The notes below the pieces were generated by a model. The model worked only from the letters and a program-made list of their open reading frames with translations. It ran no database searches and had not been told where the DNA came from. A program made the translations under genes and the position numbers. This document shows positions 7,053 through 55,758 of a stretch of 64,000 nt of DNA, in pieces. Within the stretch, counting starts at the first letter, position 1. Each line of letters opens with the position of its first letter. The stretch is from Dendrobates tinctorius. Its lineage: Eukaryota. The stretch lies in assembly GCF_039654945.1 (NCBI RefSeq), contig NW_027361751.1:29450001-29514000 (forward strand). The letters are read 5' to 3'.

Positions 7053-9144
7053 GTAAAACACCTATTGGACGTCTATTGCACACAGCACGTAAATGGACAT
7101 TGTATTCGACCTTCCCACCGACCAAGAGAGTTTATTAATAACGTTAACTCGGTCATAATATGTTGAAAGTATAATTACATTAAAAGAAGAATATATGGTA
7201 AATATGAAAAATTGTGGTCAATGTGGCTGGAATTCCCAGGTGTAACACTGTCCTCTATGTTTTACAATTGTGATATATAAAATGATAATAATAATTGTAT
7301 TTGTTGTAAGTTGTTAATATGAGATGTTTGTATAACAGGGTCATCGATAATCCAACTTAAGTGCCTTTTTAAAAAAAATTAGTAAGGTCCAAGATTTTGG
7401 GGTGGGTTTCCCAAGAGCAAAAAGACAAAGCAGGACTAAGTATTGTGTAGAGTGAGCGCTAGTCTGATTTGAATCCATGTGTACGGGGGTCTGCTGGAAT
7501 CAGTAAGGAAATTCCACCGCTAAGAAAATGTCATCCCCTCATTCCTGGCCAACGTTTTCAACTCTGTTTTGTGAAACGTGGCAATGTGAAGGAGTCGGAC
7601 TCGGATTCATGTTGCTCATGGTTCGGCCATTATCAACCAGTGGACAGGTTTTATTTTGTGTGGCTTTATGACGCTGTCTGAATTAGTCGTGTATAATGCA
7701 CAAACATTTTGGGTCCTCCAGAGAGGGGACATTTCTTGTAGTTACTCTCGGATCATACATGAAAGAACCAAAACTGGTTCATACGCAGCGTTAGAAACAT
7801 AAAGCCATAGGATGGGGGGAAGAGTAATCATTGTACGTACAGCGGGCTGTTATATACCAAAAAAAGAAAGAAATAGAGGGAATAAAGGACACAAATATCC
7901 CAGCCAGTAAAACTATTGATCAGACACTTGAATATACTTATGGCGTTGTCTCTCTTGGCAGCACATTGGCATTGCCATAAACAATAATGGAAAATCATTG
8001 CTTCAATCACAGCGTCCTCCTTCTTTGGATCCACATTGTTTTTACGAGGTTTTTTGCTTCAGATTTTTACATTTCTACTGCAAATTAAGCAAATTTATTG
8101 AGATGATAGGCAGAAAGGGATATTTACTGCCATTGAGATGACTGTCTTACTGACATGCCTGCCCACGGACATTTACAAATCGCCCTTTTGCAGGCTGATA
8201 AACGAAAAAGTTCCTATTCAGAGGCAGCAAGCGGAGGTCACCAAAATGGTGGAAATTAGAAGTCGCCTAGCAAGGAGTATGGTGGTCAGATATAAATATG
8301 TCTGGGCCCAATGACGTGGCGGTCATTTATGGTCCATGGTCTGTCTCTACGATATCATGCACCCACAGACGGCCCACCGCCCAGGCCTAGTCACGCTTGC
8401 TACTCCTTGAACTGCAGTATTCATCTCATGGTCAGACTTTGCCATTGTACAAAGGACACAATTGCTGCGTTCTGGGATTTGGAGAGACATCAATCACTGG
8501 CGTAAATTACCTCAGTTTATAAAGCAACTAGTCTCAATGTAATACGGAAAGTGTGTAAGAAATGACGGCCTCGCTCTGCCCGGGATCCGCCATCAGCGAG
8601 TCTACAGTGACATCTACTGGTACCGACGTCTGTTCTCTACAGCCCGGCCCTGCAGAAATGGAGCCGGAGAATGATGAACCCACAAGTATAGAAAACTGCG
8701 GCACCTGATGACCACGGCAGATCTGTCCACAGCATGGCACCTTAAGTGGCCGATTTCACCCTTTCTGTTATTGCCGCCTTCAGGTCCTAACAATGTGATC
8801 TCACAGTTGCTTTTACATGGATTTTGACGTGGATCCGTGCCAAAATCAATATTAAAAACACTTTAAATATTCTACAAAAAAGCTGCTTATTCATTTCAAT
8901 GGGAAATCCACATGAAAGGTATTAATAAATCGCGAAGCATAAAATAAATGGAGAGACTTGGCACTTCATTTTTTATGTGGCTTTTGGAGTGTTAGCATGG
9001 AGGATTTTCAGGGGGGGGCATAAAATCTATCGAGGTTTTCAACGTAAACCCATTTCAAAAATCAATGTATTTTTTGATGAGGGTTTTCAGATCTGAAGTA
9101 ATTTTTAAACATTTTTTTTCCTAACACATTTTTGCAGTCTTTTA

Positions 9145-9706
9145 GGCTATGGTCACAAGTTGCATTTTTTTATGTGTTTTTTTTTCCCACGGAAAAAACT
9201 GCTCTTTTGGAATTAAGAAACTTGCCTCAAAATAACAGATTTTGCTTCATTTCTGTTGCGTCTTTTGCTGTTTTTGGATGCGTTTTTGTCAGGTTACATT
9301 TGTCTCTTGTCCATGCTGAAAAAGTTTATTGCAAAAAAAAAAAAAAAAAAAAAAAATACCTGAGTCTACTTCATCAGGTTTTGGCAAAGAAAAAAAAAAA
9401 AAAACCGCAGCAAAACCTGATAATTGTGTTTTTGCAACCTTTTTTTTTTTTTTTTTAGCATTTTTTTGCACCATTCATTGCTTTCAATGGCTGATAAATG
9501 CTGAAAAAACAGTGGAAGAAGTGACTTGCTGCACTCTGCAAAAAAAAAACAAGGTATTGCACAAAATACTGAAGACAAAAAAAACCAAGCTATGCGCATG
9601 CCATTTCTGAAATCTTAGACTTTGCTGGTACTGTAAAACGCAGCTGAAAATTTGCATTAAAAAAAAAAAAAAAAAGCTGAAAAAAACGCAACGTGTGAAC
9701 CTAGCC
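9145..9706. mobile_element. PIF/Harbinger-type MITE
   Basis: TTA|GGCTATGGTCACA ... TGTGAACCTAGCC|TTA; 3-bp TSD; palindromic A/T-run interior. Confidence 0.8.
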
Positions 9707-10366
9707 TTATCCTTCAATGCAGAGTTTTGTGCAGATTCCGCAAGGATTCCATAGCATATGTTTAAAACGTCACTTTGATGTATCCTTGGTGCGGTTTTCA
9801 AAATCTTATGGGGGACAGCAATGTGGATTTTGACCATGCAATCGTAAGGAAAAATATTCAAAGAGTAATTGAAGCAGTTTTGGAGAAGATCCACATAAAA
9901 AAAAAAATTAATCACACTACAGCCCATTCTGACAGTGTGGCGGAGCATTACATACCAGGGGGAAACATACCAGGGGTCCGGCCAAACAATTACTCTTTTC
10001 TATTGATGTACAATTATTCTCTTACTGCTGTCTGCCGTGACACCAGAAGATTTCCATTCCTCTCACACATTTATAAAACATCATATTGCGGCAAGTCTCC
10101 AAATCAGTCATTTAGGATTGTACGAGAACGCGTCTTCCCACTATAAATTGTCAGTGATGAATAAATCAGAGCCTGCATTATGGATGAGGCCGCGAGAATG
10201 AGGCCAGATTTGGTCTTTGCACTAACACACGCTAAAACACATCACAATTAATAATTTACATTGGTTTTGTATCGGGGAAGTAGAAGATAAAACCTCGCCA
10301 TGATGAGAGGAGTGCAACAAGAAAGCAACAACCTGAGACGCATTGCACTGGAAAAATGGGACTTAC

Positions 10367-10467
10367 TTCGGAGCCACCCTTCTCCAGTAGCGATCGATCC
10401 CGTTCTTAAAGTAGAGTACGGCGAGCCATCGCACGTTCACATCCAGGGAATGATTGGTGAAGATATT
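10367..10467 (-). CDS. IPO11: Importin-11, second coding exon (NIFTNHSLDVNVRWLAVLYFKNGIDRYWRRVAP)
   Basis: 101 nt; TAG acceptor and GTAAGT donor; in frame after the first coding exon; matches the recalled vertebrate IPO11 N-terminus. Confidence 0.95.
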
Positions 10468-11619
10468 CTACGAGCAAAAACAAAGAAGCTACAGGCAAAG
10501 GAAATGCAAGAAGTGACAAAGAAATAAAGCCCTTTGCAATAGTATATTTTCCTTGTTCACACTGGTATCTTTTTTTTTTTTTTTTTTTTAGTTTCAGAAT
10601 TTTGTATTTTGCAAGGCAAGAATACCAAACTACAAGAAAAAATGTAAAAAAAAAAAAAAAAAAAAAATACCAAACTCAACACATCGAGAGTGATCAGAAT
10701 CGCTTTGAAAACATATAAAGGCCATTTTATCCAGAGTGGGGATTTGTATGCCAAGGGTGCGCCAGAGTGGGGTGCACCAAATTCATTCATACGTGGACAT
10801 TTTAATGAATTTGGTGTGTATTTCAGAGGCAGAAATGTTACTCCAGTTATTGACATTGATGCCTTAAATTTACGCTGTTTTTGTGGAGTCAGTTATACCA
10901 GTTTTGATGAATAACATCCAGCGAATAATCAAAAGATAAAATTTAACTTTTAATGCAAACAATAGTTAAAATTCCATTTAAATATAGTCCAGCACAATAC
11001 ACACACCGGCTCAATGCCGCTAATGAACAACACGTTTCAACCTATCAACGAAAAGCATTGATCATTAGCGGCATTGAGCCAGGATGTTATTCTTCATTAC
11101 TGGATTCTGCTGTGGTTGCTTCACCCTTGTCCGTGCGGAGCTCCATGAAGCAAGCTGGACATCTAGATGGACTAAAAGTGGTGAGCTGACTTCTCGTATT
11201 TTTTCAGTTATGATGCGTGGAATTTGTTAGGCCGGGCTCAAATATTGGGTGGAGTGGACTTTAAAAAAAAAAAAAAAAAAAAAAAAACTGTAAAAGGTTA
11301 GAAGAATTTAGTGGAAGTAAAAAAAATGTGGACACGGCAAACAGTTTTACATCAGATGTCTGAAACCATACGATGAATCTGCCCCATGGGGTGGAAATTA
11401 TCAAACTATCTGAGCCACTTTTTTTGGTAAAAAATAAGACGCACGCCATATCTGAGCTAAAATGTGCAACTTTTGTCACCTACTGAATGCCCCATTAAAA
11501 GGGAACCTCACATGCTGCACTGTCTGAGCTATGTCATAGAGCCGCTACTTGTACCAGGCTGGTGAGATGTGACTGATGAAGGACACCCAGGCTGCCTTCC
11601 CGCTTTCGTGCGATGGATG

Positions 11620-12719
11620 TGTGGCACCCCAGAGTCCGGTTGCCACGGTGACATTGCCTCCCTCTAAGGCATGATGTCATGCTTGGAGGCAGGGGGGGGT
11701 CCCCATGCCAGGTAACACAGTGTACATGTCAATTCCTGCTCTAGGCCAGAAAGGGGAGCTTCCTTATCAATTCTGGCCAGCAGGTGGGGTTAGTGAGTCA
11801 GAAAGAAGTCAGCTGAGAGTAAACAGGAGAGTTGTCATGGAGACGGAAGCCAGCTGGAGCTGTGACAGGACAGTGAGAGAGAAGAGTTGGCAGTTGGTCT
11901 GTGGAGAGGGAAGGTCTCTGGGGAACTAAAATTGAGTATAGCTGACCCCAGAGCGGAGCGCTGATAAAAAGGGACCCCAGAGTCCTTAGCTGGGTGGGTG
12001 CTGTACGCCCTGACAGCCGAATCTGGAGGGCAGGGGACTGCAAGCTCCCTGGCCACACTGAACACCTGAAAGCATGGCAGCAGATGAAGAGCCCGGGGTT
12101 GACAGTGAAAAGGACAGTGCCCGTGAGGGCTGACAGTGAAAAGGACAGTGCCTGTGATATAGGCTCACGCTGTCTGCCATACAGGTTAGAAACTATCACG
12201 CAGGAGAGGGCCACGGCTTAGCTACAAGCAGCAGAGACCCGAAAAGAGAGCGCAGAAGGAAGGTCCCCAACCCCACCTGGCAGCGTGGATCCCCTGAATG
12301 CCTCCAGGCAAGCCAAACTCAACCCGTCATCTGTAAACGGTACCCCAGATTGCATCTACTTTCAAGTAAAAGGTAAAGAAAACTACACCTCTCTATGTCC
12401 TTCACTTATTCTCTGCACCCCAACGTTCACCACCATCTGAACAATCAAATATATTTGCCCTGGGGCCCCGTTCTACCCGTGGGGAGCCGAACCATCTTTG
12501 CTGCGTCACCATCAGCCCCAGTGGACCAAAACCGCAGCGTTGGCCACCCATTGCCAAACACCACGGGTGGCGTCACGATTAAACACCACATAACTATTCT
12601 CTATTTTATGTTTTATGACACGGCCAGGGCCACGAAAACGGATCACGGCCCCGTGACCTCCCCCATAGAACTGTCAGATCCGATTCCTAGTACCCCACGG
12701 CCCTGGTGGGCGTGTCACA
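11620..12719. mobile_element. Solo LTR (about 1.1 kb)
   Basis: TGTGGCACCCC ... GTGTCACA termini; its start matches the reverse complement of 54000-54069; TSD not clean. Confidence 0.65.
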
Positions 12720-15259
12720 TGCTTGACCTACGCTCCACTCATTTCCAATTTGTCTGCCAATTGTTGTGCTCTGCTTTTTCTGGCAGCCCTATAGAGAATG
12801 ACTGGAGCAATGGTCGGGCATCTGACCTGCTCCATTTAACAATGAGATAAAAAGTTCCACGTTGAGTATAAAAATTCCCCGATCTGCCGATAGGTGCAAC
12901 TTCCAGCCGGGGGTCACCCCCTAATCATAAAGTTATCACTAAAAGTTACAACTGATGACCAAGTCAATTGAAAATCTGCTGTCACCCGCCTGCACAATGC
13001 TGATGTCCGCCACCAGCCGGAGCAGTATCTGATCTGTGTAGGGCCCAGGTGTTGGACCACCACGAATCTCACATTGATGACCTAACCTGTGGATAGGTCA
13101 TCAACTGTTAAGTACCAGCCAACCCTTTAAAATATTTATACAAAAAAATAGAAATCTTAAATTCCAAACCTTTGTGAATCTCAGCAAAGCACAGAGATCA
13201 AGGCTTTAAAGCAAAAGGGATCAGACGCAAAACAGAGGAGACGTTCTCCTCACTGCAAAAAGATGGTTTGAAATGAGTAGTGAAATAAATCCTCATTTAC
13301 ATGGTACAATTAAATGGATCTTAGAAACTGTCTCGGTGCTGACTGAACGGAGGGATCTTCAGCATAGTGAAAGAGAAAGGCCAGACAGCCGCCATCATCA
13401 CAAATATCCCTCCCGCTATTTGCATTTTAAGTGACTGTTCCAGGACGGGCCCCGAGGAGAACAGACGCGCTGACCACGACGTACACTTCTCTGTAAAACG
13501 AATCTGTATTCATCATTGTGTTTAAAGGTGAATATTAAATCCCGCTCCGAATGGTTATTCCCAAAATTAGCCGCACTCAGCACAATAAACCTGTCGAGGC
13601 CGTGACACAAGCGCTTATAAATGAGGCACAAGATAATTTTATCGAAGCCTAAATAACAAAGCGCAGGGATACGAAGGGTCAATGCTTAACGCAGACATCT
13701 ACATAACAAAGGTCCACAACCACGATGGACTATTTCATTTTGGGAGAAGGGTAGTATGCCCATTTTTGAGGTTGCGGGAAGAGAATGGCTCAGGGGTTAG
13801 ACCTGAGGCACCAAGGCCATAGGTTCACCCAGATGAAGAAAATGTCTCCTCAGAGTCTGACCAACCTCCAATTGCTTGCTATGTTTTTTTGGTCATGTTT
13901 CAAAATGAACCTTTCAGCGAATAGATCAATGTGGTATGGGGTCTTATTTACATGACTGTTATTCTTCACCGTGTGACAGATGTCGATAACAAAGGATCCG
14001 GATCATGAGGACACATATCCAGTTATGGTGGAGCAGAGAGTCAATGGCTCCCTGCTCTGCCTCCGAGGCTCGGAGCAGAGATCATCAGCATCCAGTGCAA
14101 AGTCATCACTTCACTGCATTGAACAGGAAGATCCTGTGGCTCGTCATCGTAATAATGGACTCTAGCTACGCCCCTATGGGCGCATCCCTGTTCTTAAAGA
14201 GGACCCTTCACCTAGTCAAAAGTGTCCAGTTTTGCTTTTATTGCGCTCCAGTTTTAATCAAATCCGCGCTTTTATTAAAGAAGCCCTCCTCCTCCTCCCA
14301 TCAAAATTTTTATCCTGTTAATATATTGCAGTCATCATATTATACAGCACTGTGTACTTACAATTGCTCATTTTTCCTTTCTACCCAGATAATTCTTCTC
14401 TTTCCCATTAGGTCAATGACATCACGTGATTAAAATCTGACTAGCATGATTGCCTGATTCCCAAAGTTACATTTCTCTCCGCTCATTCTTTGCCTGACCC
14501 CAGAGGCTGCTTCACCTGGAGCAAAGAGGTTTGGGGGGGGGGGGGGGGGGTTACGCACATTTTGGTGGTAGGTATCGGTGCCAGATGGTCCTGCATCTGT
14601 CAAGCATTTATGGCCTATGCAGGGGATAGACAATAAAGGTGTAAGGTGGGAATACCGCTATAACAAAGTTTGAGAGTGCATATAAATACGCAGGATTTCG
14701 TAGTGAGCGGTCTGGAGCTATTGATGTGAAGTTTTTGCAGACTGAGTGCAAAATAAAATTTGAGCAGAGAATAAAATAAAATAAAATAAAATATGTCATG
14801 TGTAAAAGAAAAGATCAAATCCTGGAGTCAGAAGAACAGAAAAAAGGATAAGAAAACATTAAAAAAATGCCACTTGGAAAAGATAAAATGTGACAATGCA
14901 TCTGACAGCAGAAGAAAGGCCTGCCAATAGAAAGTGAGATAAATGAAGCAAGCGTGGCTCACTGAAAGTCAAATGACAGGCGGAAATCTTCGCGGATCAG
15001 ACTGACGCCAAGAGATGCACAGGAGACACAAAGACCCATAAACAGGAGTCTTTATTAATCCATTCAGTGTAAGAAGAAAAGAGCCGTCACCTCACGGGTA
15101 CTAGACGGCGACAGCAGAGGAACCACGAGAAAGACGGTGTCGAAAGCTGAAAGTTCCACACGAGGCTGGAAGACCCTCACTTACAAGAAAAGGGGTCCCC
15201 CAATTACTGACTCCCTTGCTAGGTGGGTACATACCGCTGCACCTGAGTGGGGGCTGCTG

Positions 15260-17099: not shown

Positions 17100-18664
17100 C
17101 ACTGCTCAAAAAAATAAAGGGAACACTGAAACAACAGAATCTAACTCTAAGTAAATCAAACTTCTGTGAAAACAAACTGTCCACTTTGGAAGTAACACTG
17201 ACAATCAATTTCACATGCTGTTGTGCAAATGGAATAGACAACAGATGTTAATTATTGGCAATTATCAAGACACCCTTAGTAAAGGAGTGGTTCTGCAGGT
17301 GGGGACCACAGACCACATCTCAGTACCAATGCTTTATGGCTGATGTTTTGGTCACTTTTGAATGTTGGTTGTGCTTTCACACTCGTGGTAGTATCAGACA
17401 GGCTCTACAACCCACACAAGTGGCTCAGGTAGTGCAGCTCATCCAGGATGGCACATCAATGCGAGCTGTGGCAAGAAGGTTTGCAGTGTGTCAGCGTAGT
17501 GTCCAGAGGCTGGAGGTGCTACCAGGAGACAGGCCAGTACACCAGGAGACGTGAAGGGAGCCAAAGGAGGGCAACAACCCAGCAGCAGGACCGTTACCTC
17601 AGCCTTTGTGCAAGGAGGAACAGGAGAAGCACTGCAGAGCCCTGCAAAATGACCTCCAGCAGGCCACAAATGTGCATGTGTCTGCACAAACGGTTGGTCT
17701 GTGTGCCCAACGTCCACAGATGGGGGTTGTGCTCACAGCCCAACACTGTGCAGGACGCTTGGCATTTGCCACAGAACACCAGGATTGGCAAATTCGCCAC
17801 TGGCGCCCTGTGCTCCTTACAGATGAAAGCAGGTTCCCACTGAGCACGTGACAGACAAACGTTACAGAGTTTGGAGACGCTGTGGAGAGCGATCTGCTGC
17901 CTGCAACATCCTTCAGCATGACCGGTTTGGCAGCGGGTCAGTAATGGTGTGGGGTGGCATTTCTTTGGAGGGATGCACAGTCCTCCATGTGCTCGCCAGA
18001 GGTAGCCTGACTGCCAATAGGTACCGAGATGAGATCCTCAGACCCCTTGTGTGACCATATGCTGGTGCGGTTGGCCCTGGGTTCCTCCTAATTCAGGATA
18101 ATGCCAGACCTCATGTAGCTGGAGTGTTTCAGCATTTCCTGCAAGATGAAAGCATTGAAGCTATGGACTGGCCCGCTCGTTCCCCAGACCTGAATCCGAT
18201 TGAGCACATCTGGGACATCATGTCTCGCTCCATCCACCAACGTCACGTTGCACCACAGATTGTCCAGGAGTTGACTGAAGCTTTAACCCAGGTCTGGGAG
18301 GAGATCCCTCAGAAGAACATCCACCACCTCATCAGTAGCATTCCCAGGCGTTGTAGGGAGGTCATACCAGCACGTGGAGGCCACAAACAATTCTGTGCAT
18401 CATTTCTTTGTCTTCAAGTATTTCTACTGAAATTCGATCAGCCTGTAATTTGATTTTGATTTGAATCTGCACTTTGATTTTCAGTATCCTTCCAAATCCA
18501 GACCTCCATGGTATATTAATTTTGATTTTCATTGATAATTTCTATATTTTATTGTTCTCAATGCATGCCACTATGTAATGAATAAAGATTTGCAACTGGA
18601 ATATTTCATTCAGTGATATCTAGGATGTGGTATTTTAGTGTTCCCTTTATTTTTATGAGCAGTG
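17100..18664 (+). mobile_element. Tc1-like DD34E transposon, full length, decayed
   Basis: TIRs CACTGCTCAAAAAAATAAAGGGAACACT / AGTGTTCCCTTTATTTTTATGAGCAGTG|TA; TDESRF, QDNARPH and [13 protein letters not shown] motifs with frameshifts and stops. Confidence 0.92.
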
Positions 18665-43760: not shown

Positions 43761-45052
43761 TTATGAAATCAACCTGTCCAGTTATGAAGCAACACTGATT
43801 GTGAATCAATTTCTCCTGCTGTTGTGCAAATGGAACAGACAGCAGGTAGAAATGATAGGCAATTAGCAAGACAACCCCTATAAAAGAGCGGTTCTGCAGG
43901 GGGTGACCACAGACCATTTTTCTGTTATCATCCTTTTCGACTGTTTTTTTGGTCACTTTTGCATTTTGTCATTGCTCTCACCCCTAGAGTTACAGTACAG
44001 TAGCATGAGGTGGTGTCTACAACCCACAGAAGTTGCTCACGTAGTGCAGCTCATCCAGGATGGCCCATTAATGCAAGCGGTGGCAAGAAGGGTATCTATG
44101 TCTGTCAGCACAGTGTTCGGAGCATGGAGCAGATTCCAGGAGACATGGAGGGGTCATAGTAGGGCAACATCCCAGCAGCAGGACCTCTACCTTCCTCCTT
44201 TGTGCAAGGAGAAACAGTGCCAGAGCCCTGCAACATAACCTCACAGTCCACCATGTCTGCTCAAACTGTCAGAAACAGACTCCATGAGGGTGGTATGAGG
44301 GCCTGAAATCCATGAGTGGGTGTTTTGCTTACAGCCCAACTCTGTGCAGAGCAATTGGCATTTGCAGAGAACACAAAGATTGGCAGTTTTGACATTGGCG
44401 CCCTGTGCGCTTCACGGATGAGATCAGGTTAACACTTGCACATGTGAAAGAGTCTGGAGACGCCGTGGACAACATTCTGCTGCCTGCAACATCCTCCAGC
44501 ATGACTGGTTTCTGGTCCCTGAAAAATGCCCACAGGAAAATTGCCCACACAGAAAATTGCCCACACAGAAAATTGCCGATTGCAGCATCATGAACTTTAA
44601 GATCTAAGATTTTTGAGGTGTAAGGTGAGGATGTTCACATGATATGTGATCAACTTGTGATTTACTGTTGATCTAGTGCAAAACTGCAAAAATGAAGATC
44701 TGTGTTTGTAGCAGTCTGTCATTATCAGCAAAAGATAGATATAGTCTGCTCTCATCTCTCACTGATTCTGCCTTACTCTTCCCACCAGCCTAAAACAGCA
44801 GTACATGCAGAACCAGGAGCAGTGTGTGATGCAGAGGAGCCATCACTGCTATCAGTACTCACAAAAGTATCACTGTATTATCTGTGGAGTTACATGTCAC
44901 ATGTAATACATTAACATCTCAGTGGGAGCCCACCAAAAGCAGGGAGCTGCTGGCAGAGACAGATGTTCCTGGAAGCCCAGAAGGCACAGCAGAAAGCTGA
45001 GATTCTGCAACTTGAACTACCTTGTGTTCTTGCTGAGAATGTATGTTTTTTG

Positions 45053-45980
45053 CAGTGGTGTAACTGGAGTCCGATGGGCCCCAGTGCGAAATTTGGACCT
45101 GCCCCCCCCCCCACACACACACACGTTGGTCAGATGTATGGGCCACTGTAGTGTTCTAAATTCTATAAAGACTTATGAATTGCCCCCTTCATTATGTAGT
45201 AAAATGTCCCCCATCCTGGTATATATGCCCATCATCCTGGTGAATATGTCCGCATTCTGGTATATATGGTCCCCATCCTGGTATGTATGGTCCACATGGT
45301 CTCCATCCTGGTATATATGCCCCCTTCCTGGTTTACATGGTCCCCAATCCTAGTGTATATGTCCCCGTTCTGCCCCTAAAGATAATTAAAAACAAAAACA
45401 TTCTTCTCACCTTTCCTCTGCTCCCACGTCGCCCAGGGTCTTTTGTAGCTACTGTACAGCCCGGCAGCTGACATCGGAGTGTGCGCCATTGCCATGCGCC
45501 GCTCCCTGTGGCTTCTCCGACGTCAGCAACACGATGCATGTAATCTGGATCTGCATCTTCAGTGAGGACGGAGAACCAGCAGAAGCAGGCACCTGTACCC
45601 CTGTGCCTGGTCGTAGCCTTGTTTCCTGCGACCACAGTCGTTGCACCTCTGTGCTTTTTTCTGTTGGTGAACCAATAGTCTTACCAATGTGTGTTACCCG
45701 CACCCTGTGTTGTCTGAGTGGTGTTCTACCCATGGGGATCGAGTGTGGGCATTAAGTGGGATGAGCTCTGGTTCTTGCAGGCTCTCGAAAGACAGCCAGG
45801 CCAGCAGACAAAAGCCTCCACTGACCGGTGTGTCTCCTTAGTGATGTCACTGACCAACAGAGGACCCGGAAGCGCCGCTCTCCTATTCATTGGCAGTGAA
45901 TCTGGCGCCTGCACTTCCTTCCCTGTCCACTTATGGCTACCAAGAGTAAGAGTGAACAGATCCTACGTAGTTATGTATCA
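45053..45980. mobile_element. Degenerate hAT-like non-autonomous element with a roughly 21-bp minisatellite (45205-45370)
   Basis: CAGTGGTGTAACT left end; weak AGTTATG right end. Confidence 0.45.
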
Positions 45981-46503
45981 TACACTTATACTGCAGGTGT
46001 GGGCAGGCATAGGATGAAGGAAAATGCAGAATGGATTGGAATCAGGGTCTCTAGGCTCATACACACCACACTGAGCGTGGAATGACAACTCGTAAGAACA
46101 GAATCTGTCCTCTGGGACTAGGTATGAGTGACCCGAACCTGTAGAGCCCGGAGCAGTCAGCTGGGCCCAGAGACCTGTGGTGAAATCCAGTCTGCATCTT
46201 CTTTGCTGCCTGTGTTGTGCTGTATTGTATTTTAATGGAGCCCATTGAAGTCACCGGACTTTCCTTGTTGACATTATTTCACATGTTCCTTCCAGCACTC
46301 CCCCACCCCCCCAATTGTTTTAAATTGGCAATCCTGTGATTCCTTTTGGTACAACCCCAGTGAACAACGGCTTTCCTGTTGTGCCAGCCAATTGTATTTT
46401 GGTTAAAACATGTACCTTAATAGCTCTATCCCTATATTTTTTTTCAATAAAAGTGTATTTTGAGTTCATCTCAAGTATTCTATTTCTTCATGTAGTGCAA
46501 ACA

Positions 46504-46730
46504 ATGGAGTTTTCAAGACGCCAGAGGAACAACAAAGTTGTGATTTACTTGGGAGTTTGAAGATCTTGCGTTTCATACTATCAGCGCAGCGGTGACTTGG
46601 AAATGACGACTGCATCGCTCTTCAAAGGGCCATTCAGTTCTCAAAACAAAAGATGACAACGTAGTTCAAGAACCAACAGAACATTATCATGACTCCTGCC
46701 CTCAAAAAGCCTAAGCAAATGTGCTGCAGA
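46504..46730 (+). pseudogene. FLYWCH zinc-finger remnant (transposase N-terminus)
   Basis: MEFSRRQRNNKVVIYLG /+1 fs/ FEDLAFHTISAAVTWK*RLHRSSKGHSVLKTKDDNVVQEPTEHYHDSCPQKA; both expected Cys codons are one change from TGY (TGA, GGC). Confidence 0.7.
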
Positions 46731-47786
46731 GCATCTCTCCTAGAATTCTATACTATTCTCCTGTCCTGCAGAGCATCTCACCTATACCTGTATACTATCC
46801 CCCTGTCCTGCAGAGCATCTCACCTATACCTGCATACTATCCCCCTGTCCTGCAGAGCATCTCTCCTAGAATTCTATATTATTCTCCTGCCCTTCAGAGC
46901 ATCTAACTTATAATTCTATATTTTTCTCCTGTCCTGCAGAGCATCTCACCTATACCTGTATGCTATCTCCCTGTCCTGCAGAGCATTTAACCTATAATTC
47001 TATACTATTCTCTGTCCTGCAGAGCATCTCATCTATAATTCTATACTATTCTCTGTCCTGCAGAGCATCTCACCTATAATTCTATACTATTCTCTGCCCT
47101 GCAGGGCATCTCACCTATAATTCTATACTATTCTCTGTCCTGCAGAGCATCTCACCTATACCTGCATACTATCCCCCTGTCCTGCAGAGCATCTCTCCTA
47201 GAATTCTATATTATTCTCCTGCCCTTCAGAGCATCTAACTTATAATTCTATATTTTTCTCCTGTCCTGCAGAGCATCTCACCTATACCTGTATGCTATCT
47301 CCCTGTCCTGCAGAGCATTTAACCTATAATTCTATACTATTCTCTGTCCTGCAGAGCATCTCATCTATAATTCTATACTATTCTCTGTCCTGCAGAGCAT
47401 CTCACCTATAATTCTATACTATTCTCTGCCCTGCAGGGCATCTCACCTATAATTCTATACTATTCTCTGTCCTGCAGGGCATCTCACCTATAATTCTATA
47501 CTATTCTCTGCCCTGCAGGGCATCTCACCTATAATTCTATACTATTCTCTGTCCTGCAGAGCATCTCACCTATAATTCTATACTATTCTCTGTCCTGCAG
47601 AGCATCTCACCTATAATTCTCTACTATTCTCTGTTCTGCAGAGCATCTCACCTATAATTCTATATTATTGTTCTGCCCTGGAGAGCATCCACGTATACTT
47701 GCATATTATCCCCCTGCCTGTCCTGCAGAGTATTTAACCTATAGATCTATGCTATTCTCTGTCCTGCAGAGCATTTAACCTATAAT
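46724..47786. repeat. 41-42 bp satellite (CTGCAGAGCATCTCACCTATAATTCTATACTATTCTCTGTC), resuming at 54070-54115
   Basis: About 25 copies; 332-bp higher-order duplication. Confidence 0.95.
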
Positions 47787-49904
47787 TGGATCACCCCCAG
47801 GGCTGTGGGATACTCGGTACCGGGCCGGTGTCTTAAAGGGATAGGTCGCGGTGGCAGTGACCAGGTCCGTGGCCCTTGGTGTCCATGTAAAATGGGTGAA
47901 ATGTAGCTGAATAAAGTTTATAGGTAGATGATTCGTGACGCCACCTGTGGTGCTCGGTAAGGAAGATGTTAAGCCGACGCTGTGGTGCAGACCCTCTGGG
48001 ACAGATGATGTGGCGCAGCAAAGATGTAATAGCTCCCCACAGGCAGAGCTGTAGTCCCAGGGCAGTAGTAATAGGTGTTGAGGTAGATGGTGTAGTGTTA
48101 GGCACAGAGATGTAGCAGTGCTGAGTGGGTTGCAGGAAGAATTCAAAGAACACAATAGAGTGTAGTTTCTTTTACCTTTACTGAAGGTACAGTCCAGGAT
48201 TCAGATTACAGGTGGTACAGGAATTGGTCAGCCTGGAAGCAACTTGGGAATCTCTCTATGCAGATAGGTTGTGTAGTCTCCTTCCTAGTGCTAATCTGAA
48301 GTACTTGCAGTTCTGAATTACACTCAAGTTCCTCTTGCTTGCTGTTACTTGAACTCCACTCGCATGGCAGGCAGCTGTAGCCTTCTCTCTCTGGCTCACA
48401 CACGTTGCTGCTGTGACTCCGAGTCTTAGGTGGGAACAGAGCATTTACAGCCTCTTGTTCCTCCGGTTTCTGCTGCAGGATCATTAGTATCCATACAGCC
48501 TCGGACACCGGGGTCCGGTCAATGCGCTTCAGCTGGGAGTGAGCTTAAAGGGGTTGTCTGGGCTTTTCACATAATCTCAGTACATATTTGGGCTGCAGAA
48601 TTATGACAATAAGTAATTTACTTTCTGTCACTAGTTTGCACGGTTTTCTAGATATTCTGAACAGAACGTCCAAGGGGGGGGTGTTATGGCATTGAAATGA
48701 GAACTAGTCGTAACCTCCTACTCTACTCCAAACATGCCCTCTATAGCAACAACCCCACCCTCCATAGCTACAGGCCCTCCCCGTCCACATGAAGAAGCCC
48801 TCATCACACAGTAAGGAATAGTGATGGGAAGTTCAGCTCTTTTTAGTGATCCGGCTCATTCGGCTCCGCTCACCATAAAGAGCCGGCTCTTTTGGCTCTT
48901 TAAACGGCTCTTTTTTAAATAGAAATCCGTTTTCCACAGTCTTCGTTCTAGGTCTTTGCCTGTAAAGTGAGGGCCTCATTATACACCTGTATAAGGATCT
49001 AGTGACGCAGTGTAGACTGTTATTCAGCATTGCTGCTTCCTCAGATTGTCAGCTCTTGTGATCAGCCCCCGGCTGAGTGGGTTGCAGGAAGAATTCAAAG
49101 AACACAATAGAGTGTAGTTTTTTGTTAATGTCCTTTGTGAATTAGTAAGTGCTGTGATATGTGTTGGTGCACCTGATGCATCCTGATCCTGATGCAAACG
49201 CAGGTCCGTGCGTCCCTATGTTAAGTATAGGGATGTAATCTGGCTCAGGATGCATCAGGATTGCTACACATCACAGCGCACCGTACCACAACGCTAGTGT
49301 GAACGCAGACCCACTCGTACAGCCCCTAACCAGGTGCCCCCATGTCATATACATGCTCCCAATACATTATCATTACCACACTGTAACACAGGGCATAAGC
49401 CCTTCTAGTGAAACATCACTATATGACAGAGCAGCGTGCGGACATAGTCTATATTATGTCTGCATACTGGTCCCATACAGCACTTCCCTCGCTTCCGAGC
49501 ATGCTCAGTGCCGCAAAACGGATCCCTGCACACGGAAGCACATGGATCCATGTTGTCCTGGATCCGTGCCCCATAGAGCTCCATGTTAATTCCAGACGTG
49601 TAGCCGCGGATCCGTGCGTCTCCCTGCGCCTGCGTGTTTTTCAGATGACACAAAACTGCAACAAGTTGTGTTTTTGTGCATCTTATAAAACATGCCGACA
49701 CAGCGATCCGTGGGAAAACGGTGACATCTGGATGCACAGTCCCATCCTTCACCACTACAAGTCAATGGAGACAAAAACGGATCCGTGTGCATCCAAAATA
49801 TGCAAGTGTGACACCAGCGTCACCCTATATAATGATTGGGGCTGGACCTGATCTCTCCACAGGTTTTGCCTAAAATCACTTTATATTCCTTCCCCTACCC
49901 TTAG

Positions 49905-50118
49905 GGCTCATACTCACTTGCGAGAGAGTCGCGTGATTCTCGTGCGAGTCTCTCGCATGGAAACCTGGCACTGCTGCCGGCACTGGGACTGGAGCGTGCG
50001 TCTGCATAGAAATACATGTAACCACACGCTCCGGTCCGAGTGCTGGTGGCAGTGCCAGGTTTCCATGCGAGAGACTCGCACGAGAATCACGTGTGTCTCT
50101 CACAAGTGAGTATAAGCC
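49905..50118. mobile_element. Harbinger-type palindromic MITE
   Basis: GGCTCATACTCACTTG ... CAAGTGAGTATAAGCC; about 95-bp arms. Confidence 0.8.
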
Positions 50119-50179
50119 ATTAGCAGAAACAACTGCCGCCGTCTATCCTCCTCCCTGTAGTGTTGTCCTGAATCCTCCT

Positions 50180-50498
50180 GGCCCTGCGTTCAACGGGATC
50201 CGTTACATAGCGGCACTAACGCTATGTAGCAGATGCGTTAACGCACCCTTTGGCCGCAATGATACTAACGCATCCAAAATCAGCATGATGTGTTACTTCA
50301 TGACGCACCCTTGAACGCGGTCTGCAGCATTTGTGAGTGCGTCATGAAGTAACGCATCATGCTGATTTTGGCATCCGTTTGGATGCGTCAGTAGCAATAT
50401 GGCCAATGGGGGCGTTAGCACATCCGTTATATAGCGTTAGTGCCGCTATGTAACGATCCCGTTGAACGCAGGGCCATTAACGCAATGTGAACCTGGCC
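50180..50498. mobile_element. Harbinger-type palindromic MITE (left end truncated)
   Basis: GGCCCTGCGTTCAACGGGATC / GATCCCGTTGAACGCAGGGCC; right end TGTGAACCTGGCC|TAA. Confidence 0.65.
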
Positions 50499-51458
50499 TA
50501 ATACTATGAGAAAATGATATACCAAACAATGTGCGGAGTCCCTCCTCCTACACATACCATGTACTGTATGTATAATGAAGTGTATATTTGGGACTAAAGG
50601 TAACACACAGGTCATTGCAGATGATAATGACAAACAATGTGCTGCGTCCCTCCTCTTACATATAGTCACATACCATATATGCCATGGAGAAACTGGCAGG
50701 ATATATTTGGGACTGAAGGGTAAACTCACGTGCATTTATTCACATCTCCTCCTCTCCTGACTGCTCCTCCCCCCCAGATGAGTCACAGTCAGGCTTCACT
50801 AAGCTACCAGGCGCCAAAAAAAAAATATCGGCTCGTTCACCCTGCAGAGCCGACTCATTTCGTTCACAGCAGGGAGCCGGCTCTTTGTATCGGATCGTTC
50901 ACGAACGACATATCACTAGAAATGAATTCTTCCCCTCCAGCAGCCTCAGTGCAGAGAGCAGAGAGCTGCTCCTCCCCCAGACACACACTGAACAGTTATC
51001 TATGGAAAGTGAAACTAGTGAGGAGGTAAAATCGTCCTGTATTCTGGGCCACTCCATGATTACCATACATAACTCATCAGTGATTCCTTCCCTCACTGTC
51101 CTAGGCTGCTGGCAGCAGTGAGAACAGACTATGTGATGGCCAGTGATGGGGGTCTGAAGCTTCTAATCTGCACAGGGGATGGCAGTCACTGATGTAATCT
51201 GTTGTGTGACAAAGCCTCTGCTGTGTGAATGAGACAGCTCTGTGTCACTGATGTCTTCACACAGCAGCAGATTTGGTGCAGTGTATGTGCGAAGCTCCAC
51301 CAAACTCCCAAACTCCCAGCAAGCTCCAGTGACCAGCACCACCCACTGCCCACTCATTGGCTGGCAGTAAACTGCACCAGCACTCATCTTTATCATCATT
51401 CCAGCAATGGAAAGAACACAGCAGTGATCCTGTATTTGTGAAAGCAGCACAATACATA

Positions 51459-53065
51459 CAGTGGGGCAAAAAAGTATTTAGTCAGTCAGCAATAGTGCAA
51501 GTTCCACCACTTAAAAAGATGAGAGGCGTCTGTAATTTACATCATAGGTAGACCTCAACTATGGGAGACAAACTGAGAAAAAAAAATCTAGAAAATCACA
51601 TTGTCTGTTTTTTTTTTCATTTTATTTGCATATTATGGTGGAAAATAAGTATTTGGTCAGAAACAAAATTTCATCTCAATACTTTGTGATATATCCTTTG
51701 TTGGCAATGACAGAGGTCAAACGTTTTCTGTAAGTCTTCACAAGGTTGCCACACACTGTTGTTGGTATGTTGGCCCATTCCTCCATGCAGATCTCCTCTA
51801 GAGCAGTGATGTTTTTGGCTTTTCGCTTGGCAACACGGACTTTCAACTCCCTCCAAAGGTTTTCTATAGGGTTGAGATCTGGAGACTGGCTAGGCCACTC
51901 CAGGACCTTGAAATGCTTCTTACGAAGCCACTCCTTCGTTGCCCTGGCGGTGTGCTTTGGATCATTGTCATGTTGAAAGACCCAGCCACGTTTCATATTC
52001 AATGCCCTTGCTGATGGAAGGAGGATTGCACTCAAAATCTCACGATACATGGCCCCATTCATTCTTTCATGTACCCGGATCAGTCGTCCTGGCCCCTTTG
52101 CAGAGAAACAGCCCCAAAGCATGATGTTTCCACCACCATGCTTTACAGTAGGTATGGTGTTTGATGGATGCAACTCAGTATTCTTTTTCCTCCAAACACG
52201 ACAAGTTGTGTTTCTACCAAACAGTTCCAGTTTGGTTTCATCAGACCATAGGACATTCTCCCAAAACTCCTCTGGATCATCCAAATGCTCTCTAGCAAAC
52301 TTCAGACGGGCCCGGACATGTACAGGCTTAAGCAGTGGGACACGTCTGGCACTGCAGGATCTGAGTCCATGGTGGCGTAGTGTGTTACTTATGGTAGGCC
52401 TTGTTACATTGCTCCCAGCTCTCTGCAGTTCATTCACTAGGTCCCCCCGCGTGGTTCTGGGATTTTTGCTCACCGTTCTTGTGATCATTCTGACCCCACG
52501 GGGTGGGATTTTGCGTGGAGCACCAGATCGAGGGAGATTATCAGTGGTCTTGTATGTCTTCCATTTTCTAAATATTGCTCACACAGTTGATTTCTTCACT
52601 CCAAGCTGGTTGGCTATTGCAGATTCAGTCTTCCCAGCCTGGTGCAGGGCTACAATTTTGTTTCTGGTGTCCGTTGACAGCTCTTTGGTCTTCACCATAC
52701 TGGAGTTTGGAGTCAGACTGTTTGAGGGTGTGCACAGGTGTCTTTTTATACTGATAACAAGTTTAAACAGGTGCCATTACTACAGGTAATGAGTGGAGGA
52801 AAGAGGAGACTCTTAAAGAAGAAGTTACAGGTCTGTGAGAGCCAGAAATCTTGATTGCTTGTTTCTGACCAAATACTTATTTTCCACCATAATATGCAAA
52901 TAAAATGAAAAAAAAACAGACAATGTGATTTTCTGGATTTTTTTTTCTCAGTTTGTCTCCCATAGTTGAGGTCTACCTATGATGTAAATTACAGACGCCT
53001 CTCATCTTTTTAAGTGGTGGAACTTGCACTATTGCTGACTGACTAAATACTTTTTTGCCCCACTG
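51459..53065 (-). mobile_element. Tc1-like DD34E transposon, nearly intact (transposase 52698->51676, 340 codons, one TGA at codon 40)
   Basis: TA|CAGTGGGGCAAAAAAGTATTT TIRs, about 210 bp and near-identical; WSDETK / QHDNDPKH / SPDLNPIE with 34-residue D-E spacing. Confidence 0.96.
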
Positions 53066-55758
53066 TACATACACCCCCCAACACTTCACACTGTTACAGC
53101 TGCTGACTGGACAGGCTGCTCCCATCAGTATTTGTGTCATTAGAGACACAGTGCTCACACGTACACTGCACCAAATCTGCTGCTGTGTGAAGACATCAGT
53201 GACACAGAGCTGTCTCATTCACACAGCAGAGGCTTTGTCACAGAACAGATTACATCAGTGACTGCCATCCCCTGTGCAGATTAGAAGCTGCAGACCCCCA
53301 TCACTGGCCATCTCACAGTCTGTTCTCACAGCTGCCAGCAGCCTGGGACAGTGAGGGAAGGAATTACTGATAATGAGTTATGTATTGTAATCATGGAGTG
53401 GCCCAGAATACAGGACGATTTTCCCTCCTCCTCACTAGTTTCACTTTCCATAGATCACTGTTCAGCTTGTATCTGGGGGAGGAGCAGCTGGGTGGTCTGC
53501 TCTCTGCACTGAGGCTGCTAGAGGGGGAGGATTTGTTACTGTGTGATGAGGGCTGCTTCATGTGGACGGGGAGGGCCTGTAGCTATGGAGGGTGGGGTTG
53601 TTGCTATAGAGGGCATGTTTGGAGTAGAGTAGGAGGTTACGACTAGTTCTCATTTCAATGCCAGAACACCCCCCCTTGGACGCTCTGTTCAGAATATCTA
53701 GAAAACCGTGCAAACTAGTGACAGAAAGTAAATTACTTATTGTCATAATTCTGCAGCCCAGATATGTACTGAGATTATGTGAAAAGCCCGGACAACCCCT
53801 TTAACTTCAGCTCAATCCTTCCTAGTTCGTCTCTCCACGTCCACACTCTTCCCCCTCGCTGCACAATCTTCTGACTAACTTCCCTTTCCGGGCCACAGAG
53901 AGCAGCTCCTCAACAGTTTGTTTGAGCTCCCCCTGCTGGCCTGGAGTGGAAACTGTGCTGTGTGCTGGAATTACCTGATAGAGATCCTTCATTGCTTCGA
54001 AGCATGACATCACACTCCCTAGGAGAGAGGTAATGCCACTGTGGCAACCGTACTCCTGAGGGCGCCACATAATTCTATACTATTCTCTGTCCTGCAGAGC
54101 ATCTCACCAATAACTCGCTACTGTTTTCCTGTGGGTATTCATGTCTGTGGGCAATTTTCTGTGGGTATTTTTCACATATCATGTGAATATCCTCACTTTG
54201 CACCTCAAATATCATAGATCTGAAACTTTGTGATGCAGCAATTGGAAATTTTCTATGTGGGCAATTTTCTGGTCACCACGGTTTGGCAGTGGGTAATTGT
54301 GTGGGGAGGCATTTCTTTGGAGGGTCACACAGCCCTCCATGTGCTCGCCAGAGGTAGCCTGAATGCCATTAGGTACTGGGATGAGATCCTCAGACCCCTT
54401 GTGAGACCATATGCTGGTGCGGTTGGTCCTGGGTTCCTCCTAATGCAGAACACTGCCAGACCTCATGTTGCTGGAGTGTGTCAGCAGTTCCTGCAAGATG
54501 AAGGCATTGAAGCTTTGGACCGACCTGCCTGTTCCCCAGACCTGAATCCGATTGAGCACATCTGGGACACATTATTCCATCCACCAATGCCACATTGCAC
54601 CACAGACTGTACAGGAGTTGACTGATGCTTTAATCCAGGTCTGGAAGGAGATTCCTCAGGAGCCCATCTGCCGCCTCATCATGACTATACTCAGACATTG
54701 TAGGGAGGTCATTCTGGCACGTGGAGGCCACTGTTACACGTAGTATATGGCTTCAGGGGTGTGGTTTGCAGAGCAAGAGGAACGGAGCTCTTAAATTTTA
54801 AATATTTAATCCGGAAAGGTAGGCAGTCTTTATAGGAAAAAAATACACAAAACTGATAAAAAAAAATGGGAACAAAACAATACTGTATATAGAATCACAT
54901 AAAATAAAAGGGATAACAAAAGAAAAGTACTAAATTTGTGTCACGGAAATGGCTCAGTGCTTACCGGAGGCAGGTACTCCTTAGGAAACGGGCAGAACCC
55001 ACAGCAAGCTGTACCTTCCAGAACTGACAAGACCAAAACCCAAACTCTGATTTTTATTAGATGAAGGGTATGCTCTCATACCTCCCCTTCGTAGGCTCAT
55101 ATAGGGGCTGGTTGTAGAATGTGCTAGGTCTTTTAGAATTTTACGAGATCCCCAAATTTCAGGATATCTTCATCCCAGGAGATACTGTCACATTTCCCAT
55201 CACGATTTTACCTTTCTATAGAGATGAATCATCGCATGGATGGCACCATCTATCTGACCATTATTAAGTTGGATCTGTTCAGCCAGCCTTATGGTGATGT
55301 GAGTGAATGTGGTAGGTTTGTCCCTTCACTACGACACCAAAAATAGATCTCCCATAAATTTTGGATCAATGAAAACCCAATATTCATTACTGATCACTGG
55401 ATCCAGGATGTCTAAATCCTTTGAATAGAGGCAGCTCTTATCTCAGAAATGTACTTCTGTGCCTCTGAAGTACACAAATCCAAGCCTCGGTGGCTGGTTC
55501 TCAAAGCAGATCACTGCTCTAATTACCTGCTCATGACAGCGAGCCCTACTCCAAAGGAGGTTGCAGCATTAGCTCTTTTTCATTTCCTCAGTCATAATTA
55601 ATCCCATATGGGCAATATGAGGGTGATATGTCCCTTCTCCGGAGAGGGCTGTATTTTTTTTTTTCTCTGTGACAAACCCTGCATAATGTGCAGGATTTCT
55701 TCAAGACTATTTGAGGATCCTACAGAAAATGCTGCAGACTAACAAAACATCTGGCTTA

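Follow-up and report, generated by a model that had tools for sequence, protein, structure and literature searches.

The stretch analysed here (the window) comprises 64,000 nucleotides of the Dendrobates tinctorius genome (RefSeq assembly GCF_039654945.1, contig NW_027361751.1, positions 29,450,001 to 29,514,000) and contains, at window positions 44514-54277, a Mutator-type DNA transposon that sits inside a decayed Tc1 copy. Our results indicate that this element is very probably a member of a Phantom-type (FLYWCH-MULE) Mutator family of dendrobatoid-type frogs, namely a deletion derivative that is non-autonomous and long dead. The window copy shares its termini and internal sequence with a complete element of Ranitomeya variabilis (locus L006), whose open reading frame (ORF; protein P0015) passes the Pfam profile MULE (PF10551). 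A first-pass annotation of the window had proposed a Phantom/Mutator-like identity, and this proposal is supported by the FLYWCH link, by the presence of a MULE partner within the same ends, and by 9-bp target duplications in sister copies. The parts of the window copy and its flanks are as follows (window positions):

43764-44504, plus strand: host Tc1-like pseudogene, left part, 72% identical to the Tc1 copy at 17167-17928
44505-44513, no strand: left 9-bp target duplication CTGGTTTCT, with three differences from the Tc1 target
44514-44649, plus strand: left terminal inverted repeat, with the 16-bp subrepeat x3.6, 89% identical to L006 8774-9094
44650-46503, plus strand: 5' non-coding region of the element; 44553-44875 and 44946-45688 match L006 8774-9914, and 46436 onward matches L006 9933 onward
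46504-46722, plus strand: transposase remnant, FLYWCH zinc finger, residues 1-73, by read-through homology
46720-47787, plus strand: 41-bp minisatellite, 25.7 units, with a 332-bp higher order, abutting the deletion breakpoint
47788-54068, no strand: foreign nested insertions, not MULE, ~6.3 kb splitting the minisatellite, the array of which resumes at 54069
54069-54128, plus strand: last minisatellite unit(s), 87-92% identical to array units, matching L006 13680 onward
54129-54277, minus strand: right subterminal region and terminal inverted repeat (54172-54277), 83% identical to L006 13680-13855
54278-54286, no strand: right 9-bp target duplication ACGGTTTGG, with one difference from the Tc1 target
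54287-54731, plus strand: host Tc1-like pseudogene, right part, with an ORF matching Pfam DDE_3 (E 2e-8)

The R. variabilis element (CM120278.1) occupies positions 8764-13878 of its locus (5115 bp), has GGT...ACC tips, and carries an intronless transposase gene at 10001-11359. A complete family member of ~5.1 kb is accordingly made up of the left end, ~1.2 kb of non-coding DNA, an intronless gene of 452 amino acids, a ~1.9 kb spacer, a 42-bp minisatellite and the right end. In the window copy, the parts follow one another in the same order as in L006, from tip to tip:

L006 8774-9094, window 44553-44875, 89% identity: left end and leader
L006 9094-9914, window 44946-45688, 77% identity: leader
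L006 9933-10218, window 46436-46722, 91% identity: gene start
L006 13263-13738, window 46720-47787, ~72-85% identity, with most alignments at 80-85%: minisatellite
L006 13680-13855, window 54074-54269, 83% identity: right end

The element of Ranitomeya imitator (L007) is likewise collinear with the window copy. Compared with the Ranitomeya assemblies, the window element displays 86-92% DNA identity in its best segments and 76-77% in the remainder of the 5' region; another repeat of the window, the DNA of which is CpG depleted, is 82% identical to these assemblies. A further relative was encountered on a JGI contig (3300042621; L009), whose MULE gene is 82% DNA-identical to that of R. variabilis. 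With a CpG observed/expected ratio of 0.31, this contig is probably vertebrate host DNA inside a metagenome. Its right end has subrepeats at 16-bp spacing, and it also holds fragments of Harbinger and long interspersed (LINE) elements.

A word-index search with a 300-amino-acid relative (P0009) returned 82 proteins, many of them full-length FLYWCH-MULE proteins of ~450 amino acids. Three are frog proteins: P0015 of R. variabilis, an open frame of 452 amino acids, P0027 of Anomaloglossus baeobatrachus, for which no contig position was found, and P0034 of R. imitator, which is frameshifted. P0015 scores 29.7 bits with Pfam FLYWCH (PF04500) at residues 3-62, against a cut-off of 23.6, and 36.0 bits with MULE, against a cut-off of 27.6; for P0015, P0027 and P0014, Pfam shows FLYWCH and MULE alone. 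The zinc ligands of P0015 are C34, C42, H60 and H62, and its DDE-type motifs are D177, D239, C260-x2-H263 (21 residues past D239), W349 and E367. Across an alignment of eight sequences, D177, D239 and W349 are invariant, and the CxxH motif and E367 are widely conserved. MULE transposases have been characterized by a DDE triad in which the second D is followed, 15-45 residues on, by a C/D(2)H motif and the E is preceded by a W (PMC5499845), and, as judged from its sequence, P0015 bears a predicted DDE triad plus the C(2)H and W features of MULE/hAT enzymes. The same protein carries a 4-residue duplication near the catalytic E and private changes at conserved places; within its ORF, a 12-bp tandem duplication is seen at L006 11125-11150.

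The remnant of this gene in the window is a hidden frame starting at 46504, the translations of which are exactly as quoted in the first-pass annotation. We built a read-through of 46504-46722 in which X marks the frameshift and each stop, and this read-through aligns end-to-end with residues 1-76 of P0015 (78% identity, 120 bits), the homology extending beyond the zinc finger into the transposase linker. Identity to P0027 and P0034 amounts to 74% and 71%, respectively, and the next best match reaches 58%. Relative to the two Ranitomeya copies, the frame is damaged by one frameshift (an extra A at 46554), two stops (TGA for TGC at 46604-46606 and TAA for GAA at 46712-46714) and one Cys-to-Gly change (GGC for TGC at 46628-46630). 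The first of these stops takes the place of the conserved W-R-C cysteine, and the Gly that of the second Cys, so that both Cys ligands are destroyed in the window. The two cysteines that had been bracketed in the earlier reading are thus real in relatives, as indicated by the TGC at 46604-46606 in the two Ranitomeya copies and by a T at 46628 in other copies.

These other copies were recovered as contigs of public sequencing runs (three DNA runs plus a fourth run) aligned to 44400-46720. In copies from the same and related genomes, the A at 46554 is absent, which restores the frame, and T replaces G at 46628, which restores the Cys; they also carry T for G at 46562. Contigs from the four runs span the whole of 44514-46720, and one contig starts matching at 44516, following 185 unlike letters. 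Further copies of the element exist in the same and related species. The deepest variant among the aligned contigs omits 37 bp (46483-46519) and thereby loses the ATG at 46504; a high-copy non-coding subfamily lacking this ATG may exist.

Assignment of the frame to FLYWCH is further supported by the 35-amino-acid stop-free piece at 46607-46711. On its own, this piece had no match in Pfam and none in a PDB sequence search, because it is too short, and a word-index protein search with the 78-amino-acid ORF at 46324-46557 returned nothing. An exhaustive HMMER search of 1.84 billion representatives with the 35-residue piece yielded seven matches (E 6e-11 to 9e-4), five of which carry Pfam FLYWCH above the curated cut-off, including four (53-61% identity) of the five short matches; one of the remaining two is a repeat protein without FLYWCH. 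The predicted FLYWCH identity is borne out in P0015, whose residues 3-62, aligned with the window frame, pass the Pfam profile. One relative, the 134-amino-acid 'FLYWCH-type domain-containing protein' of Strongyloides papillosus (P0004; UniRef A0A0N5CIX3), is 53-61% identical to the window frame, and its similarity carries on into the transposase linker.

As to the termini, positions 44550-44649 are complementary to 54172-54271 as an inverted repeat (100 nt, 87%). Including the extra subrepeats, the left end measures 136 bp (44514-44649) and the right end 106 bp (54172-54277), and both belong to the long (>100 bp) or complex terminal inverted repeats by which the Phantom type is recognized. 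The left end contains a tandem repeat of period 16 (3.6 copies, 44521-44577), and the right end has one subrepeat at its tip and two further inside, with copies of the motif at 54146, 54160 and 54256. The 14-mer core of the subrepeat, GAAAATTGCCCACA, occurs nine times in the 64-kb window when up to two mismatches are allowed (0.98 expected), and six of these nine occurrences fall within the two ends. The tips read GGTCCC... and ...GGTCACC, i.e. GGT...ACC; the left-end tip is that of both Ranitomeya copies, and the last 28 bp of the right end agree with the R. variabilis tip at 24 of 28 positions. The annotated inverted repeats of ~135 bp with tandem subrepeats and GG...CC ends are therefore in accordance with our results. 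Between 2 and 12 subrepeats are present, depending on the element. Subrepeat and minisatellite arrays differ strongly between copies: L006 has 2 end subrepeats and a 0.47-kb minisatellite, and L007 (8496-8680, 18902-21167) has 12 end subrepeats and a minisatellite of >2.2 kb.

The insertion site could be reconstructed with the help of a second Tc1 copy in the window. Positions 43764-44511 are 72% identical to 17167-17928 of this copy, and 54279-54731 are 86% identical to its continuation (17923-18384), the two flank matches overlapping by 6 bp on the copy at 17167-18384. Moreover, 81-97 contigs per DNA run, and 33 in the fourth run, diverge at 44511 into uninterrupted Tc1 sequence. In the second copy, the uninterrupted target is CCGGTTTGG at 17922-17930. 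The 9-mers reported as flanking duplications, CTGGTTTCT and ACGGTTTGG, are present letter for letter, but the pair alone does not fix the length of the duplication: the two are equal at five of nine positions, plus one C/T difference at the target CpG, and the certain duplication at the window copy, from the Tc1 overlap, is 6 bp. Because its own 9-mers agree only at these five positions, the 9-bp length at the window copy is taken from the sister copies; mismatches are unsurprising, since the flanks are only 72% and 86% identical to the other Tc1 copy. In R. variabilis, GCTGGCCGC and GCTGGCCAC border the element and form a 9-bp duplication, with eight of nine positions equal and the lone difference at a CpG. 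As the insertion lies within the Tc1 copy, the element moved after that copy landed, in agreement with the order of events that had been suggested.

A comparison of the interior with L006 revealed what the window copy has lost. Past ~46722, the window gene passes directly into the minisatellite, and the counterpart of L006 10219-13262 is absent. This missing ~3 kb holds residues ~74-452, with all catalytic motifs, and the spacer. Using the middle and C-terminal parts of the protein of a further relative (L003, described below) as tblastn queries, nothing better than E 0.1 was obtained in the window, indicating that no catalytic remnant survives there. Since the whole catalytic part is lost, the window copy would be mobile only with transposase supplied in trans. 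The window minisatellite has its homologue in the 42-bp array found at L006 13274-13737, on the downstream side of the transposase gene. Upstream of the gene, neither Ranitomeya copy has the ~740-bp segment found at 45689-46427 of the window. This segment, with AATAGTCTT on one side and AATAGCTCT on the other, is probably a further small insertion that produced a duplication of 8-9 bp.

Elements with the same architecture were also found on two ENA contigs, ctg290643 (L001) and ctg301751 (L003), in which a FLYWCH ORF is directly followed by a Pfam MULE ORF. Their inverted ends comprise 8-11 copies of a 16-bp unit sharing the 14-mer core of the window, and their right tip is GGTCACC, as in the window. 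The 9-mers flanking L003, GGGCAGCGC and AGGCAGCGC, are equal at eight of nine positions, and those flanking L001 at seven of nine. A 9-bp target duplication is thus present in the family (8/9 in both L006 and L003); a clean duplication comes from only two independent sister insertions. The element of these contigs shares an 8-9 bp duplication with the frog family, and with the window copy a ~2 kb leader ahead of the gene and an N-terminus that is 46% identical to the window frame over 76 amino acids. In contrast to the frog family, it has 10-11 subrepeats per end, no minisatellite, a GC content of 0.33, CpG that is not depleted, and a gene with one stop and one frameshift. The GC content and the undepleted CpG suggest that the host is probably an invertebrate. 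Besides the subrepeat motif, the only DNA similarity of the invertebrate-like elements to the window is a short FLYWCH coding stretch in L002, an invertebrate-like ENA contig; in the same locus, a decayed FLYWCH ORF is preceded, at a distance of 6.5 kb, by an ORF matching Pfam Viral_Rep (PF02407; 3119-3490). The peptide that had been assigned to these ends is linked to them elsewhere: in L006, L007, L001 and L003 the N-terminus continues into MULE (PF10551) and is bounded by subrepeat-type ends.

Among known Mutator systems, the frog family most readily bears comparison with Muta1 of Aedes aegypti, a member of the Phantom group (PMC5499845, PMC6446971). Like the frog family, Muta1 has a single intronless FLYWCH plus DDE/MULE transposase, a C(2)H motif, a W before the E, ends of >100 bp, an 8-10 bp duplication and a length of 3-5 kb, and the frog protein shares 63% identity with a FLYWCH-MULE protein from a mosquito (P0029). 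The Muta1 transposase is 504 amino acids long, compared with 452 in the frog family, whose host is a vertebrate. Unlike Muta1, here compared by description, the frog family has ends of 2 to 12 16-bp subrepeats and a 41/42-bp minisatellite after the gene. The aphid Phantom elements and the root-knot nematode Tm1 (PMC3169594; PMC6446971), likewise compared by description, share with the frog family a FLYWCH-MULE protein of 430-500 amino acids, 9-bp duplications, complex or foldback-like ends with subrepeats, and non-autonomous derivatives, and in the aphid Phantoms a minisatellite also lies behind the transposase ORF (PMC3169594; PMC6446971). Their hosts are different, and the frog ends are short beside the foldback forms. 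The frog family fits the Phantom type in its ~450-residue FLYWCH-MULE protein, 9-bp duplication, complex ends, non-autonomous derivatives and post-gene minisatellite.

For Muta1, the transposase has been described to bind the ends, to excise the element through hairpins on the flanking DNA, and to join it to the target (PMC5499845). By homology with Muta1, the N-terminal FLYWCH finger of the frog protein would bind the 16-bp subrepeats in both ends, an assignment proposed because motif and finger stay together in frog and invertebrate-like elements. The DDE domain would then excise the element via hairpins on the flanking DNA, and reinsertion with a 9-bp staggered cut would yield the 9-bp duplication, both steps being modelled on Muta1 (PMC5499845). 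The window copy landed in the Tc1 copy and, before or after that event, lost everything between codon ~74 and the minisatellite, so that it could have moved only with transposase from a complete copy. Decay followed, as seen in ends that are 87% alike, four disabling frame changes, the 740-bp 5' insertion, and the 6.3-kb nest in the minisatellite.

Several features of the window copy could be read differently. It lacks a catalytic domain, its target duplication alone would fit 6-8 bp, and the search also matched a host multi-FLYWCH protein (P0001); the FLYWCH exon might accordingly be a captured fragment of a host gene, in the manner of Pack-MULEs, or the ends might belong to hAT, P, Merlin or another superfamily with 8-9 bp duplications. 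We consider this very unlikely, as the same ends in L006 and L007 flank one continuous FLYWCH-MULE ORF, the window frame is 78% identical to the L006 ORF versus 39% to the host-type P0001, and the similarity reaches past the finger into the transposase linker. With regard to another superfamily, the partner protein contains FLYWCH and MULE only, and no BED, hATC, THAP or IS1595-type domain in Pfam. Merlin, hAT, P and IS3EU-type readings had been raised by the GG tips and by the only 6 bp that are surely duplicated, and were dropped because L006 has a MULE gene between the same ends. Merlin, suggested by the GG tips together with duplications of 8-9 bp, encodes an IS1016/IS1595-like DDE transposase, and the partner protein here is a MULE. 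hAT elements have a BED finger, a C-terminal dimerisation domain and an 8-bp duplication; Pfam finds neither domain in P0015, P0027 or P0014, and the sister-copy duplications look most like 9 bp, although they may be 8 bp. Still less credit can be given to the view that two unrelated solo ends, or miniature inverted-repeat transposable elements, merely face each other across unrelated DNA. The 9.7 kb between the ends is indeed mostly foreign DNA, and the ends are only 87% alike; against this, the two flanks continue a single Tc1 copy and overlap at the target, the minisatellite occurs on both sides of the nested block, and the order of parts matches L006 from tip to tip. Equally improbable is that the 452-residue frog gene is a domesticated host gene, of which the window would hold a pseudogene copy and not a transposon. 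Domestication would be in line with the open frame of the R. variabilis gene and with the gene models that exist for three frogs, but the gene is flanked by inverted ends and a 9-bp duplication, copies lie at unrelated sites in at least three genomes, and within Tc1 here, and they have decayed unequally, as illustrated by the frameshifted P0034 and many contig variants.

Some considerations nevertheless weigh against a dead Phantom-type derivative as the identity of the window element. The two 9-mers at the window copy agree at only 5/9, and both bases beside the left tip are wrong (CT for GG). Placement within Phantom relies on the domain architecture of the protein and on its mosquito and beetle relatives in the tree, and not on a tree with named Phantom members. 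Finally, binding of the FLYWCH finger to the 16-bp subrepeats is proposed by analogy.

The distribution of relatives raised the question of how the family came to reside in frogs. Among the matches labelled by NCBI or UniRef, three dendrobatoid frogs are the sole vertebrates, the others being insects, shrimp and rotifers, and most of the nearest Atlas clusters are arthropod. In a quick tree built without canonical Phantom sequences, the frog clade falls within a well-supported clade including mosquito and beetle FLYWCH-MULE proteins; closest to it stand two JGI proteins without a label, one of them on a CpG-depleted contig. The frog protein is 69% identical to a protein from a freshwater metagenome, the ORF of which is 70% identical to the frog gene at the DNA level. 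A scan of viral_contigs with the transposase alignment returned no relative and thus gave no support for a viral carrier. It is conceivable, although we regard it as rather unlikely, that the poison-frog lineage acquired the family horizontally, from arthropods or other small invertebrates, and that the R. variabilis ORF is still, or was very recently, mobile. The end core of the R. variabilis element is 95% complementary between its inverted copies, which hints at recent activity, whereas the private changes at conserved P0015 sites and the 4-residue duplication near the catalytic E speak against activity. If true, no earlier case of an active Mutator element in a vertebrate would be known.

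The importance of the family, which we judge to be mild, lies in the fact that genuine Mutator elements in vertebrates have been doubted. Dupeyron et al. (2019) confirmed no vertebrate MULE and left their presence in vertebrates open; these authors found no MULE transposases in the 'MULE-MuDR' entries reported for vertebrates, namely zebrafish MuDR-1..3_DR and mammalian relics (PMC6446971). RepeatMasker-style tables list 'MULE-MuDR' for anurans and human. The vertebrate 'MULE-MuDR' entries share the superfamily label with the frog family, to which the latter adds a Pfam-passing MULE domain, ends and duplications. Starting from a dead copy in the window, the analysis has led to a frog family with matching ends, 9-bp duplications, a FLYWCH-MULE gene and putative catalytic motifs, and this family offers a concrete vertebrate case for the open MULE question (PMC6446971), with one copy retaining an open frame. 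It is also a candidate for studies of horizontal transfer between arthropods and frogs, and the 14-mer common to frog and invertebrate-like ends provides a testable pairing of a FLYWCH finger with a candidate DNA site. The family had been called little described, and indeed we found no description of a frog Phantom family in the literature consulted; NCBI names the frog proteins 'TIMELESS-interacting protein isoform X1' or 'uncharacterized'. The former name looks like a misannotation arising from a transposon in or near the gene model, and models bearing either name can be corrected accordingly.

The block that splits the minisatellite consists of several insertions placed one within another. 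The outer insert (47788-54068) has TG...CA termini with TAAT on either side and may be a long terminal repeat-type insert. Inside it lies a long inverted-repeat element (48545-53804), with arms at 48545-48814 / 53536-53804 (98%) and 50925-51292 / 53155-53533 (92%), the left arm of which is broken by a ~2.1 kb insert (48815-50924). At the centre of this element is a young Tc1 (51457-53067) with 210-bp ends that are 99% alike and a 270-amino-acid ORF with Pfam HTH_Tnp_Tc3_2 and DDE_3.

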